From Pelomyxa schiedti (taxonomy: Eukaryota; Protista; Evosea): a stretch of 54,903 bases of DNA. This document shows, piece by piece, positions 31,434-38,821 of the stretch; positions within the stretch are counted from its first letter, which is position 1; the number at the start of each line of letters is the position of its first letter. The stretch covers positions 1 to 54,903 of the forward strand of contig JAHLWZ010000238.1 of the NCBI GenBank assembly GCA_020536535.1, given 5' to 3'. The notes under the pieces were generated by a model. The model was not told the DNA's origin. It worked only from the letters and a program-made list of their open reading frames with translations, and searched no databases. The translations under genes were made by a program, and so were the position numbers.

Positions 31434-33711
31434 ATGGCAGGAGTTCCCTGCCCAGACACTCCAAATCACAAATCTATAAAAATGTCCTCCCCAGGGAGGG
31501 GTCTCAGCACGGCATCTGGTTGTCCGGTAGTGGTGGATGGAGAGGCTACTGCATCACGCCGTCGTTGCAGGTCAAGCGGCAAATCGGCAGATCACGTGGA
31601 TTTGAGTTGCCCGGTGACGTTTTCTTCGACGCCACCACGGCCCTTGGAGGCGGAAATCGACGCGAAAATAGAGTCCTGGAAAAGGAAAAGAGAGGAACTG
31701 TCGAGAACTGGAGAAATCACTGGTTTCAACATCATAAAGCTGTCACTTAATGACGTTTTATTTTTCAGCGTGGTATGCTGCGAGCAGGCATATTGTACGA
31801 CTTTACCTCCAAAAAAATACAGTGGAAAATGTTCTTGCAGAACTAAAAAATGCACATGATACGTTATCCATGGTACAATAAAAACAACAAAGACAAATAG
31901 GATAATGTTCATTCAATTTAAAGTTCACATTACCAGGATAAGCGGTCTCCCAATCACTTGCTGTTCAAGGCCAAGACGGCACTCGTTAAGTTCTATTACA
32001 ACATTTCCTGTGCAAAACTCAAAATGTTGAACTCTTGTACTTTAGTATGCAGAATTGTGCCCTTGCATTACTAACTGCTTGTATGGGTCAGGATGCAATT
32101 GCTCTTAGTGGGCATTTAAAGGGTACCTACCTTTCCTCATTTACCTTATCAAACAAGCTCTTTTAGTTGCAAAAACGTTGCTAACTGAAGCTCTTGCGAT
32201 TGGAAAGAAGGCTTCTGTATCTGTTATCAAACTTCAAAAGTACACTCAACTTCTTGGCTCTATCTGCCGAGACCTTGGAGAGACAACTACGGCAGTGTCT
32301 CATTTTAAAATGGGTGTGTGTTCATTCCTTCTATTCCTTTCCTTATTTAATGCGTATGTTTAGCTTTGTCAATGAGTCCTGAGCAAGCACCGCTAAGCCT
32401 CACAGTGTGTACGGCACAATGCATGCTGCAGCTAGGGCGACTTGATGAAGTAGAATCGGTTTTGTCTCATGTTGTAATGCCTTCCCCTTTCCATCTCTAA
32501 CTTTATTCCAGGCCCTCTCTGCACCTGTGATTGAGGCTTCTCTTGATTGCATTAACTTATACAAGTTAAATTGTATACTGCACTTAAAGAAACAGCAAAT
32601 CAAGCTAGCCCTTTCAGATATTCAGGTGTGTCTCCTGTACTTTTTGGCCTCTTTTCATACTTTTTTCAGTCAGCACGTGATATGGCCATTTCAATTAAAA
32701 AAAAGAAATTTGCCGATAAGAAACTTGTTACTGTTATACAAAACGTTGCTGCTTTTGCCGGTTGATCCTTAAATCATTGTACTTCGAAATTTACTCCCAA
32801 AAAAAAAAAAATAAAACTAGAGAACCTCTCAAAAATTGATACTGACAGTACAGCCCGCTCCATCTCGAAATCATTAGACTCTGTTTCACACCTCAGTAAA
32901 GATGTGGTGTGCCTTGGAATCCCTCCTCCAAAGAAAAGAAGTTAAAATAATTCAGCGACTAGCATTGAGAGAAGTACTTGCCCACTTAATGTCAGGTTCA
33001 TCTAGTTTGGCAAGTAAATTTGCTGAATCTCTAGCTGCCGATTATGAGGCACAAGGAATGACAAGAGAAGCAGAGGAAGCATATGAAAGAGTACCACTAA
33101 AACTTTAGAAAAGAATAAATATTAATTGCACACAGGCTTGGAGGGATCACGGGTCTAAGTTGACCGCCGAGAGAAAGTGGGAGTTTTGTAGTAATTGGGC
33201 ATATGTTCTCTCTCGTATCGACCGTGCACTCTCCACAAATAAATATCAAGAAGCCTATGGCTATGCAATGGAGACTGGGCATAAAAACCTCATACAGCAA
33301 GCAAAAGAGAACCTTGCTGTCCAATTGGGTCATGCTCCACCTGACCTCGAGGCTGAGTATCGTCCTTTTTTCCCTTCTTGCAATCTTATTTTTATCCCAG
33401 GACTTCCCCAGAGGACTCTCACCAAGACTCTCACCCTTCTGTGCCAACAACATTAACTACTACCACTTGTGCATCCAAACAAGCGTCATCAGAGAGGAAA
33501 CGCAAGGTAATAAACATCCACTGCTTGCCCTTGTAAGACTTACATATGTACTCAGGTGGCAGCATTGGCACAGAAGAAAAGTGCAAAGCGGTCACGGGAA
33601 AACGCTGTGGATGGCTCTATCTTCGATTGTGATGGGGAACTCCTTCCCTGCTACACCGACACATTCGTTGTAAACGACTTGGGCTCAACCGGAGATATTA
33701 ACGATCTATGA
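31434..33711 (+). CDS. Hypothetical multi-exon helical/TPR-like protein
   Basis: Chain of short same-strand ORF pieces separated by GT-AG introns; TPR-like LLGSICRDLGETTTAVSHF and LAADYEAQGMTREAEEAYER; boundaries uncertain. Confidence 0.45.
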
Positions 33712-33895: not shown

Positions 33896-36800
33896 ATGAA
33901 TTCGAGACTGTTGACCCCAGCAAGCACGGGTGTGTCTGTGTTGAAGCGGATGGGAAGTACAACAACAACAACAAAAAAAAATAACTTCGCCGTTGTTCCC
34001 ACACAAAAGGGCGGCCCCGCAGTCGCAGTACGTCCCCGGGCCCTCGTCACGACAACGGGGGCACGCCGCCGGGGTCCAGAGCTTCCCACTCGCAGGCTGT
34101 GCCACCTGCCTCCCCGGCGTCGCGGCCGCACCACAGAACCCCCCCTCCGTCCCGTGCAGATTCCGCCGCCACCACTGGCGGGGGTAGTAGAATCCACAGC
34201 AGTAACTCGTTCACGACAACTCCGCCTTCCTCTCCCCCTCCTCCTAGTCACACTCCCGCGGGGAGCGGACACAGGCACACGCGAAATTCACCTCCTCCAG
34301 TGAGTGGCCCACCCAATTTTGGCCTGCCGCGGCTGTCAAGTGCCACAAGTGCCGCAGCAAATGCAACTGCAACTGCAACTACAACTACAACTACAACTAC
34401 AACTACAACTACAACTGCAAATGCAACTGCGGCGACAAATGCAAATACAAATACATCGGCAGCAGCGAGGGTGGAAAATGGCGTGGATGACTCTGCTTCA
34501 GCAGCAGCTGTTTCTCCTTCTTCCCCCGTTACAACTCCTCCACCACCATCGTCATCATCCTCGCCTGCGAAGCCTGTGGAATCCAACGTGAAGGTGATGG
34601 TGCGCGCAAGGCCTGCAAACGCTCAAGAACTGGAAAACGAGGGAGTCGATTGTGTGGAATTCCTAGAAGATAAGCGCACTGTTACCATCGAGGTGTGCGC
34701 TCGCACACCTCTTTTCCTTTGCTTTCTTTAACTTAACGCACCGCAGTTCTCCACCAAGCTATACACTTTCTGTTTCTCCCAGGCATTTCCGCCTGAAACA
34801 TCGCAACAAGAAGTTTTTGATGCTGTAGGACATCCGCTTGTCACTGGTACTGAACAGTCCTCATTCAACCCACCTTCCCAAAAACATTTGCAGCTGTGAT
34901 GCAGGGTTTCAATGCTGCCATCATTTCTTATGGTGCCACTGGTTCTGGAAAAACTTATACTATGATGGTTTTTTTCTCCCTAGTTTTATTTTTTTTCCAA
35001 CCTCAGTAGGGGTATGGATTTGATGAACAATCACCAGCCGCATTCATGCTCTCAGAAGACCCTCACAATGCAGTTGAAGTGCTCACATCGACCCTGCGAG
35101 GAATGATACCGAGAATGATGGGTAAAATCTACCTTTAGCAAATAAATAAGTATGGATGTGATTTCACCTCAAGACGACATTTTCGACACTATCGCACAGC
35201 GTTCCACAGAAGATATTACCTTTGAAGTACGAGCTAGTTTTATTGAAATATATTGTGAAGAGATCATGGACTTACTGACTCGTATGCTCAATTACAAACC
35301 AGAAATCTCCTCAATTTCTTCTTTGAACAGCAGAAAGAGATGAACTGTCGTTAAGGGAGTGTCCAGACCGAGGGTATAAATCCTTCTTGGCGACAAGTTC
35401 ATTCTCATTTTTTTCCAGCCTTTGGCTACCAGGAGCCACGGAAGTTCCTGTTCGATCAGCAAGAGATTGCTTGCGGGTAATGGTACGGGGGACTAAGAAT
35501 AGATTTGTAGCAGCAACCAGTACGTGATGTAGGGTTTACTTGGTTGTTCATTCTTTAACAGAAGTCAATATTGAGAGCTCTCGGAGCCATGCAATTTTCC
35601 TTGTCACTATTACGAGTAGAGCTGCCGCAGAGAGAAGGGTTTCCCAACTTTACATGGTGGATCTTGCAGGCTCTGAGAAGGTGGGTACCTGACCACACTT
35701 ACTGCTTTAACCACGAGAATCAGGTTTCAAAAACTGAAGCCACTGGTCAAAGACTGAAGGAAGCACAAAAAATTGGACTCTCCTTACTTGCCCTTGGGCA
35801 AGTAATAAAAGCATTGTCCTCTGAAAAAGTAGTTTCTGGGTTTCCCCTTTTTCCCACATTAATTGCATCGCAGAGGGGCATGCATATACCATATCGTGAC
35901 AGCAAGCTCACTCGGCTCTTGCAAAACAGGTTTCTCATTCTCACTCTTATATTTTTTCTAACAAACTATCTTCCCTTTTCAGCTTCGGAGGAAACTCCAA
36001 GACTCATCTTATAATCAACATTTCACCCAATAGCTGGTCTGCTTCTGAAACTTTGGCTACAATGAGATTTGGAGAAAGGTTTTTCAGCTCACCTTCATTT
36101 TGTCTCACACTATAAAAGATCACAAAAAATAAAAAATCTTGCTAAACCCAATTCTGAACGAACTGTTGCTGAGCTAACCCATCTGTTGAACCTGGCAAAT
36201 GCTAAGATAAAAACTCAACAAGTGGAGCTTCAGCGGGTGTGCCACTACCTAACATTTGTGAATAACGAATTGTTATTGCCAGTATCAAGAGAATATGCGT
36301 TTTATTGAAACTCTCCTCCAAGACAATCCACAGCTTGGAGAATCTATCAAACAAATCCAGGCTCTAACTCAGAAATCCCGCTGTATGTGGTACAATCGTA
36401 TCGTTGTCAGCTTACCCCAACTCCGACAAGTATCAGAAAAGGACCAGGTGCTTGCAGAGCAATACGATGAACTTGAAGAATCAGCCCTGAGAGCTGATGC
36501 AGCCGAAAAAGAATGGGCCTCACGTGATGTGACTGCAAGTATTTTTCCTACGTTCTTATCCAATAATATGCAGCAATCGACTGAGTACCAGACTACAACA
36601 ACCAGTACCTCCCTTTCAAATGAGGTCCTACCTCTTGCTGTGGTTTCAGCCACACCCCCAGCAACATCCGCACTCCCAGATATTTTTCATTTTGTGTGCC
36701 CTCTCACTCACCGTATTATGCACAACCCTGTCATTGCGGCTGACGGGTACTCCCGATTACGCCCCTGTCAATTTTTAACCCCAGTTTAGGTACACATACG

Positions 36801-37344
36801 AGAGGAGTGCCATTGAGGCTTATTTCATGGGCCATGGACTTATAAGCCCATATACACATGAGAAACTTCATTCCAAGAACCTGACACCAAATAAGAACTT
36901 ACTCAGCCAAATACATTTGCGTGTAAGCAGCACACAAATCGATGAGGTACCGCCCCTTACGTTTGTTCTCTAAACCACCCAAATGACCCCGACCCTTCCC
37001 CCCCTTTCTTCCAGGCAATATGTTACATTCAGCTTGTGCCATACTATGTACTTGTACATATATTCGGCTACCTTACAGCCGCCGCACTTGGCAATGCCGC
37101 GCAGGTGTGTGTACAGTGGAGGGATGTGATACGGCAAGGGGGACTGTGGGCCATCATGGTCGCAAAGTACTTCCCACGTCACAGTCGCCACTGCCCAGCT
37201 GGGCACGCACAGGCCTTGGCTATGTTCAAGGCGTTGTATCTGGCTCAGAAGGGTGCACGGGGCAACCCAAGAAGACACGAACCTGTACGTGACGGTGTAA
37301 ACATGTTTTTCAACAACTCAAACCCAAGCCCCCACCACTTGTAA
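33896..37344 (+). CDS. Kinesin motor + coiled coil + U-box + F-box fusion protein
   Basis: [66 protein letters not shown]; then [19 protein letters not shown]|YTYERSAI...SPYTHE...PNKNL; then [13 protein letters not shown]...AAQVCVQWR...LW. Confidence 0.85.
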
Positions 37345-37487
37345 AAAACTGCAAATAAACGTGGCAATCGTTTTTGGTTTCTTTTAGTTTGTAGAGTGAT
37401 AGATTTCAAACATGTGTTGTTGGTGGTTTACTGGGGTTTTTCCTTTATGCAAGTCTCACACTTGCACAAAGAACCCCGATTTGGAAT

Positions 37488-38821
37488 TTAGTGTCGCATA
37501 GGTTTAGTACCTGGAAGTGGAAACTTTGTACTGTTGAAAGTGAGACCAATACAATAAAAAAACAAGACCCACCCACAAGTGGAGCAAGCCAGTGTGAACT
37601 TGCAAAAGACTGAGAAATGGTTACTTGGTTCAAAAGAGCAAGAAAACTTACTTGATAAACATACAGAACACACAAATCCTGTATCAACTGCTGTCTTATG
37701 ACAAAAACATGAAGCCCGGTAGTCCACTGAAGTGAGTTTGGGAAGTTTCAGCGATTTTCTGCTGATGCTATCTGCCAAGAAAGCTGACTGATCAGGTGTT
37801 AAAAAACTATCGAAGCCATGAAGTTGCAACCAGTAGGTATTGCAGCAGACCTTCGGTTACTGTTGGCATAATATATATTCCTCCTGTTTGGTCCGAGGCT
37901 TGTTGCAAAAACGCGGAGTGTTGATCACCCAGGATGCAAGTATCTATAAGTATTCCCTTTATCCTTCATGAAAAAAGAACAAAAAAGAGCAAAGAATTTG
38001 GGCTAAGGTGGAGAGTTTGCATAGTTATAGGAAGGAAGCAAACTTTTCTTTGTGCAGCAAATATACAGTTCATCACAGGGATATACTGCGCAGATATATC
38101 CGGCGAGGCATTTAGACAGAGAATTCGTGGTTTGAGTGTAGGAGAGACGCGAGTTATCCTATTAATATCTTGTTCCCCCAGTCTTGAGACAAAATCTCAC
38201 AGTACATAGTTACTTACAACACAGTGCCAATGATAACGCTGATGATAGAACTGAAGATTCAGAAGTAGCGCTACCTGTCCGTAAATTGGAACCAAGGTGG
38301 AATACTACCAAAGTGACACACTTGGCACGACCGAAGGTAGCAAGGATATCTGGTGCAACAAAGCACTTCTCGTCCTTACGAGTCTGTCGGGGGTCTCATC
38401 AGGTGCATCCGGCTCCTCCACGGTCGGGAATATGTATCTCCTATCGCAACACAACACAGGAATAGCACATTCAGCGCGATGAAATAGCATCAGGTTGTAC
38501 CCACGATTCCCAAGCGTGGCAGGCAATAACGGCGAGTCTGTTCTTCGCATTGAGCAACAGAAAAGCGTTGATGAACGAGCACAGCTGCGAAACTGTATCG
38601 GCAAACCCCCGCCCAACAATTCCCCTGCCACTCGGCGTCGTTGCAGGCTGAGCACTGGACGATGATGTCGCCGTGGGCGTAGCTTCCGCTGACTCTGCCA
38701 TTGGCGAGTCGGCCGCTGCCGGAGACGGAGACGGAGATCCAGTTACAGACGCAGATCCAGACCACACAATCGGGCTTGTGTCCATCAGAACCACCAACAG
38801 AGACGCGTCCTCGTTGTCCAT
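37488..38821 (-). CDS. GTF2H3: TFIIH subunit p34 / Tfb4 (GTF2H3)
   Basis: SLLVVLMDTSPIVW, FINAFLLLNAKNRLAVIA, QYIPVMNCIFAAQ, FLQQASDQTGGIY, VDYRASCFCHKTAVDTGFVCSVCLS.FC...CSTCG. Confidence 0.92.

Follow-up and report, generated by a model that had tools for sequence, protein, structure and literature searches.

A kinesin motor joined to a U-box and an F-box in Pelomyxa schiedti and its relatives: a plausible motor-borne ubiquitin ligase

Within a stretch of 54,903 nucleotides (nt) of the anaerobic amoeba Pelomyxa schiedti (contig JAHLWZ010000238.1 of assembly GCA_020536535.1, hereafter the window), the locus 33896-37344 on the forward (+) strand was confirmed as a real gene whose predicted product joins a kinesin motor to a U-box and an F-box. 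Judged by sequence, this gene is one of a small conserved family, found in Pelomyxa, Mastigella and several uncultured eukaryotes, whose members share the order of their parts, and the architecture was seen in uninterrupted open reading frames (ORFs) of at least three other organisms. From the N-terminus, the predicted protein would consist of a low-complexity region, a kinesin motor of the N-terminal type, the neck, a short coiled coil, a linker, the U-box, the F-box and a tail of about 60 residues. Taken as a whole, the reading of one gene whose product, a member of a conserved family, would act as a motor-borne ubiquitin ligase (E3) is considered reasonably probable.

The DNA of the locus was recovered repeatedly. 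In one sample, the segment 33600-37500 is covered by contigs of four runs with zero differences, and in three of the four runs the segment 34432-37500 lies in one contig; hence, the DNA is not a mis-join. Under the splice model the gene has about 17 exons and GT-AG introns of 40-68 nt (40-54 nt among the motor and neck exons at 34747..36236 and mostly 40-54 nt overall, with a last intron of 68 nt), which gives a predicted protein of about 893 residues. A scripted check found GT..AG at all junctions and a spliced translation free of stops; the splicing itself is predicted from the genomic sequence. The features of the gene are as follows.

33896..34299 (+), tentative exon 1: ATG, then an Arg/Pro/Thr-rich low-complexity N-terminus; the frame is open to a GTGAGT donor at 34300
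34300..34349 (+), tentative intron 1: GTGAGT...AAG, 50 nt; the other acceptor, at 34340, gives 41 nt
34350..34692 (+), exon 2: a Thr/Ala/Asn/Ser low-complexity stretch, then the motor start (beta-1, RxRP)
34747-34846, 34894-34967 (P-loop), 35010-35121, 35174-35281 and 35331-35373 (+), motor and neck exons, first part
35419-35519, 35562-35680 (switch I and switch II) and 35724-35828 (+), motor and neck exons, second part
35874-35929 (L12 microtubule-binding motif), 35983-36078 (alpha-6) and 36119-36236 (neck linker and start of the coil) (+), motor and neck exons, third part
36283..36746 (+), coiled-coil stalk, linker and first third of the U-box; the frame is open throughout
36383-36430 (+), probable in-frame intron: GTATGT...AAG, 48 nt; the exons are then 36283-36382 and 36431-36746
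36747-36789 (+), intron splitting the U-box
36790..36946 (+), exon encoding the other two thirds of the U-box; Pfam U-box above cut-off
36947..37014 (+), phase-0 intron between U-box and F-box: 68 nt, GTACCG...pyrimidine tract...CAG
37015..37344 (+), last exon: F-box at 37036-37152, a further helix region, the conserved C-terminal motif and the stop at 37342-37344
37354..37359 (+), AATAAA, a possible polyadenylation signal 10 nt past the stop

The segment 36383-36430 is probably an intron, and the frame is kept either way. A GT..AG pair at 36532-36566 was rejected as an intron; its removal breaks the frame, and at 35 nt it would be shorter than all the other introns of the gene.

At the 3' side, the last exon has no in-frame ATG ahead of the F-box domain. 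Therefore, the F-box exon is not a separate gene and would be expressed only through splicing to an upstream exon, for which the phase-0 junction to the U-box exon offers the obvious partner. The 3' end of the gene is firm, with the stop, the AATAAA and the end of a convergent Tfb4 gene near 37490, and the phase-0 intron 36947-37014 followed by an in-frame F-box, as described in an earlier note made from the letters of the window, was found in the sequence. The span 33896-37344 given there was borne out at its stop codon, while its start calls for one more intron than the motor frame provides: the ATG at 33896 lies in a different frame from the motor exon, so an extra intron is required. The motor frame is open from 33985, with its first ATG only at 34597, inside beta-1. 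Where the ATG frame ends, 34300-34349 is the sole short GT-AG pair that resembles the consensus, and splicing there leads into the motor frame with no stop between. When a codon-usage score was trained on the confident exons, it preferred the ATG frame over the motor frame across 34010-34299 and clearly preferred the motor frame from 34350 on.

Two repeats lie in this N-terminal region, an AAC/A9 run at 33950-33989 and an ACA/ACT (Thr-coding) microsatellite at 34355-34430, where the short-read contigs of all four runs break; the assembled length of both repeats may be uncertain.

The domains were identified by a Pfam search of the splice model, done exon by exon. Five exons matched Kinesin (PF00225) in colinear order (profile positions 41-67, 70-93, 109-142, 195-237 and 239-272), four of them individually above 29.3 bits, and a profile scan of the genome (assembly of 52,367,397 bases in 5,337 contigs, as in all genome scans here) added profile positions 291-323 for this gene. 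The P-loop, switch I (SSRSH), switch II (DLAGSE) and the L12 microtubule-binding motif are all intact in the spliced translation, and the P-loop carries Ala in place of the Gln of most kinesins. Past the motor comes the stalk, about 60 residues of predicted helix, and then the U-box and the F-box; the Pelomyxa exons and the orthologues gave no further Pfam domain. The U-box (PF04564) is divided between two exons, with 13.6 bits in exon 36283-36746 (profile 4-21) and 22.7 bits in the next exon (profile 24-65; cut-off 21.4). A linker of 14 residues separates it from the F-box of the last exon, which scored 40.8 bits as F-box-like (PF12937; E = 1.9e-10, cut-off 24.3) and 24.1 bits as F-box (PF00646). 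When the whole genome was scanned, this F-box reached 42.1 bits and rank 17 among at least 147 F-box-like loci. The motifs quoted in the earlier note for the P-loop, both switches, the U-box and the F-box were thus all present at their places, and the Pfam scan that it proposed returned the three domains colinearly.

The same architecture was encountered outside Pelomyxa. An exhaustive HMMER search with the F-box exon against 1.84 billion representatives gave seven matches, with no Pelomyxa self-match among them. The best was P0001, an ORF from a Trinity/TransDecoder transcript of the pelomyxid Mastigella eilhardi (EukProt), whose 294 residues contain the coil, the U-box (61.5 bits), the F-box (33.1 bits) and the tail in one frame. 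Its identity to the Pelomyxa protein falls from 77% at the start of the U-box through 59% in the second U-box exon to 38% in the last exon. The Mastigella transcript reads straight through the site of the Pelomyxa intron 36947-37014, with a linker of 15 residues versus 14. Another of the seven matches, P0006 on the Logan contig L001, has its coil, entire U-box and F-box within a single exon. A pyrimidine tract and a TAG acceptor stand before this exon, and since the frame has no start codon before the U-box, further exons must lie upstream.

Relatives that also carry the motor came from metagenomes. A scan with a two-sequence profile kept 80 loci, 79 of which were ordinary U-box genes; only L047 (Ga0105054_10259654) had an F-box and a kinesin end. 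In L047 the frame is already open at base 1 of the contig and runs uninterrupted from the motor end to the tail through the last 65 motor residues (L12 motif, beta-8 and alpha-6), the neck coil, the U-box and the F-box, with Pfam scores of 61.4 bits for Kinesin, 34.6 for U-box and 40.6 for F-box-like. A word search with this ORF yielded three further proteins. P0070 (549 aa, on contigs of two runs) matched Kinesin at 276.7 bits (profile 50-325), U-box at 36.4 and F-box-like at 43.1, all above the cut-offs; P0071 (382 aa, contig L084) has, in the same order, the final third of the motor, then U-box and F-box; and P0072 combines a kinesin motor with the beginning of a U-box. U-box scores among the orthologues were 61.5, 43.1, 36.4 and 34.6 bits. 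The missing start of the P0070 motor was found upstream on contig L082, behind a 124-nt intron, together with a short N-terminal extension bearing an ATG. The Pelomyxa exons align in order to P0070 over motor, U-box and F-box, and the L084 motor has a phase-0 intron exactly after DLAGSEK, the same place as the Pelomyxa intron 35681-35723. The earlier proposal that motor, coiled coil, U-box and F-box form one polypeptide is supported, and the arrangement is conserved in other organisms.

Both L082 (intron 484-607) and L084 (intron around 640-780) are genomic contigs with one motor intron each. Their guanine plus cytosine content is 59-61% versus 44-48% in Pelomyxa, so the family spans quite different genomes. 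Additionally, a feature search of the ESM Atlas gave no usable match, and a region-limited word search for full-length relatives of P0070, limited by its word index and length window, returned P0070 and one weak U-box protein.

The fold of the U-box/F-box cassette was predicted with AlphaFold2 for P0070, using the family alignment (mean predicted local distance difference test, pLDDT, 80.6). In this model, pLDDT exceeds 90 in the U-box and F-box region, and a long helix, one additional helix and a disordered end are also seen; the relative orientation of the domains is undefined (predicted template modelling score 0.37). With Foldseek, the predicted U-box was placed on the U-boxes of OsCIE1 and PUB13 bound to a ubiquitin-conjugating enzyme (E2) (7xed and 7c96) at 0.8-0.9 Å, with a fit of 0.9 Å to 7xed, and the predicted F-box aligned to the Skp1-FBXO31 and Skp1-FBXO3 complexes. 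A sequence search of the PDB with P0001 likewise matched the U-boxes of PUB proteins and CHIP and the F-boxes of FBXL3 and FBXO6. In the family alignment, the U-box is the best-conserved part of the cassette; every member in which the region is present retains CP[I/L] (CG-I in P0072) and the SP loop. The E2-contact positions, which we take from CHIP-UbcH5 structures, would be the hydrophobic residue after Cys-Pro and the Pro of the second loop. In the F-box, the hydrophobic core LP/VP..[IV]L..[IV]F..L is kept. The conserved tail comprises an aromatic-x-A-L-Y-L-A-like helix, basic residues and a Gly-Val-x-Leu/Met-aromatic end; these motifs are kept in P0001, L001 and P0071, and the end motif is absent from P0070 and L047.

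Furthermore, at least five Skp1 loci, several cullins and the F-box-like loci counted above are encoded in the Pelomyxa genome, so the machinery of Skp1-cullin-F-box (SCF) ligases is available. Since the key positions of U-box and F-box are kept, the predicted folds match and Skp1 and cullins are encoded, a motor-borne E3 is plausible. In such a mechanism, the coiled coil would make a two-headed motor walking toward microtubule plus ends and would also pair two U-boxes, as in the CHIP dimer. The U-box would recruit a charged E2, and the adjacent F-box would dock Skp1 and possibly, through Skp1, the cullin-Rbx1 core. Ubiquitin-ligase activity might in this way be carried along microtubules or concentrated on them. 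Dimerisation, the direction of movement, the binding of E2 and of Skp1, and any substrate are properties that we infer. The two ideas put forward earlier, that the protein combines two ubiquitination routes or that the motor serves as the substrate receptor of an SCF complex, are kept here as hypotheses.

Several observations weigh against the reading of one gene for a motor-borne E3, and they are set out here together with the alternatives. The 5' end of the gene, including exon 1 and intron 1, is tentative, and in all four Pelomyxa runs the stretch is unspliced DNA. Two genes might have been read as one: a short kinesin ending just past 36236 (unspliced stop at 36306-36308) and a coil-U-box-F-box gene starting from the ATG at 36295, which is in the right frame. 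In Mastigella, the ORF P0001 bears the label 'type:complete' and its start nearly coincides with this point, two residues ahead of the position of the 36236/36283 junction; a motor-less product might be made in pelomyxids. However, the two residues with which P0001 opens (Met-Gln) may stem from the end of a retained intron. An overlap of 14 nt between the two genes would leave no space for untranslated regions or a promoter, and the 46-nt gap between the exons has GTGTGC...CAG ends like those of intron 34693-34746 and keeps the frame. The motor is joined to coil, U-box and F-box in one ORF by its end (L047), as a whole (P0070) or by its last third (P0071, L084). These uninterrupted ORFs in at least three other organisms make two genes unlikely for Pelomyxa, and we give that division hardly any credence. 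With a real fusion, U-box and F-box could instead be docking modules, the motor carrying, or being regulated by, an E2, Skp1 or an SCF core, or being itself a short-lived, auto-ubiquitinated SCF component; Rcy1 and Ctf13 are comparable as non-SCF partners of Skp1 in yeast. The roughly 60 residues after the F-box show no Pfam match and no recognisable substrate-binding domain, which agrees with the earlier remark that no substrate-binding repeats follow; the orthologue model has one helix and a disordered end there. The only conserved element in this part is the short C-terminal motif after the basic residues, which could be a regulatory or autoinhibitory tail. Nevertheless, the U-box, the best-conserved cassette part, keeps the E2-contact residues of the solved complexes, which would be needless for pure docking, and docking is regarded as possible and rather unlikely. 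A hybrid ligase that bypasses the cullin, in which Skp1 or a partner bound to it would serve, through the F-box, as adaptor or substrate of the neighbouring U-box-bound E2 while a processive motor delivers the unit to microtubule plus ends, is a doubtful proposal; if true, it would be a new wiring of two E3 systems combined with the spatial localisation of ubiquitination.

The layout might also have arisen repeatedly, if Pelomyxa and the metagenomic lineage each joined a mobile coil-U-box-F-box cassette to a different kinesin motor. This was addressed with a quick maximum-likelihood tree of 56 kinesin motors, in which the Pelomyxa motor exons were concatenated. In the free tree, P0070, L084 and P0072 formed a clade with full support. 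The Pelomyxa motor fell in the same loosely supported cluster of 11 rows and was not joined to the other family motors; it was paired with P0123, an ordinary short kinesin of 550 aa. Scores taken exon by exon did not single out P0070, and by these scores ordinary kinesins looked as close to the Pelomyxa motor as the other family motors did. Conversely, a tree in which the four family motors were held together was 3.3 log-likelihood units above the free search and was not rejected by the approximately unbiased test (p-AU 0.617), the domain order and the short spacings are identical, and the intron position after DLAGSEK is common to Pelomyxa and L084. RFG in alpha-6 (Gly after Arg-Phe) and a kinesin-1-like neck-linker pattern are found in Pelomyxa and in three of the four other motor-bearing members, P0071 having RFA. 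A single origin is compatible with these data and slightly favoured, and repeated origin is considered very unlikely. One gene of a conserved family, encoding a putative motor-borne E3, is retained as the preferred reading.

P0123 (L085 6001-7653, on a 163-kb ENA metagenome scaffold) is a compact kinesin without a tail domain. No U-box or F-box was found in it, and an Arf gene follows; it adjoins Arf and cGMP-kinase-like genes on an intron-poor eukaryotic contig. The genes called downstream of P0077, another near motor in the tree, have no U-box or F-box match on record.

By sequence comparison, the motor is classed only as an N-terminal-motor kinesin, with no assignment to a family, and the description "kinesin-1-like" given in the earlier note is weakly supported. 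The neck-linker pattern and the alpha-6 Gly resemble those of kinesin-1. In a phmmer search of the PDB with P0070, Neurospora kinesin-1 was the top match (165.9 bits); KIF4 (164.3), KIF14 (163.2) and OSM-3 (156.5) followed so closely that kinesin-4, -3 and -2 are nearly tied with it.

The gene is single-copy in the genome. No paralogues of the F-box exon or of the second U-box exon were found there, and none of about 18 other kinesin-bearing contigs had a U-box. The single-cell genome of P. schiedti has been described as 52.4 Mb in 5,337 scaffolds with 7.4 introns per gene (PMC8887013).

Other U-box matches in the genome start at profile position 24-25 (C479:8056-8199, C328:6034-6177, C530:200618-200758, C530:207299-207436 and C3997:13-156). 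These five short-frame U-box genes seem to share the intron place of 36746/36790 and are not paralogues of the F-box exon.

In the window, a multi-exon Tfb4 (TFIIH p34) gene at 37491-38821 (-) is convergent with the kinesin gene, with stop codons about 145 nt apart; its last exon scored 63.9 bits in Pfam (profile 215-273) and an upstream exon 30.4 bits. On the other side, three open frames at 32902-33711 (+) are coding-like and have no Pfam match. They are presumably 3' exons of a neighbouring gene, leaving about 185 nt before the ATG at 33896.

The tails of kinesins determine the role of the motor, and E3 ligases normally reach microtubules via adaptors, not built into motors. Full-text literature searches, which cover few subscription journals, returned no description of a kinesin with a U-box or an F-box and no protein with both a U-box and an F-box. 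The conserved motor family is thus apparently undescribed, and its members would be the first found in this search to hold U-box and F-box in one polypeptide. A conserved motor with two E3-type modules attached would amount to a natural experiment on ubiquitination targeted in space, and it raises the question of whether U-box and F-box cooperate, compete or regulate the turnover of the motor itself. Pelomyxa is hard to grow, although the cassette of about 200 residues and the intron-free ORFs of the orthologues make biochemical tests feasible.

The earlier note mentioned RING fingers in some plant kinesin-7s; the only protein found in this regard, and the nearest precedent, is rice OsRFPHC-10, an uncharacterised RING finger protein with a kinesin motor domain, whose authors suggested that such E3s acquired their own mobility (PMC3686435). 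In both proteins, one polypeptide joins a kinesin motor to an E3 domain of the E2-recruiting kind; OsRFPHC-10 has a RING instead of a U-box, lacks an F-box and belongs to the plant lineage. With kinesin-1, the Pelomyxa protein shares the N-terminal motor, a complete P-loop, switch I and switch II and a similar pattern of neck linker and neck start, whereas its stalk is short and the U-box/F-box cassette replaces the light-chain-binding and IAK tail regions. The likeness to CHIP/STUB1 and the plant PUB proteins lies in a canonical U-box sequence and its predicted fold (32% identity to the U-boxes of rice OsCIE1 and soybean PUB13, on which it superposes) and, for CHIP, in a putatively dimerising helical region ahead of the U-box. 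The CHIP-like dimer is a proposal made here, and the superposition over helix and U-box together is poor (root-mean-square deviation about 20 Å). Unlike CHIP and the PUB proteins, the protein has a kinesin motor as partner instead of TPR or ARM repeats, and an F-box directly after the U-box. Finally, it resembles the F-box proteins of SCF ligases (FBXO31, FBXO3 and FBXL3) in a domain that scores above the Pfam cut-offs and whose predicted three-helix fold aligns to Skp1-bound F-boxes. It differs from them in that the F-box is C-terminal, with its short remainder holding no WD40, LRR or other receptor domain, and in that a second E3-type domain precedes it.

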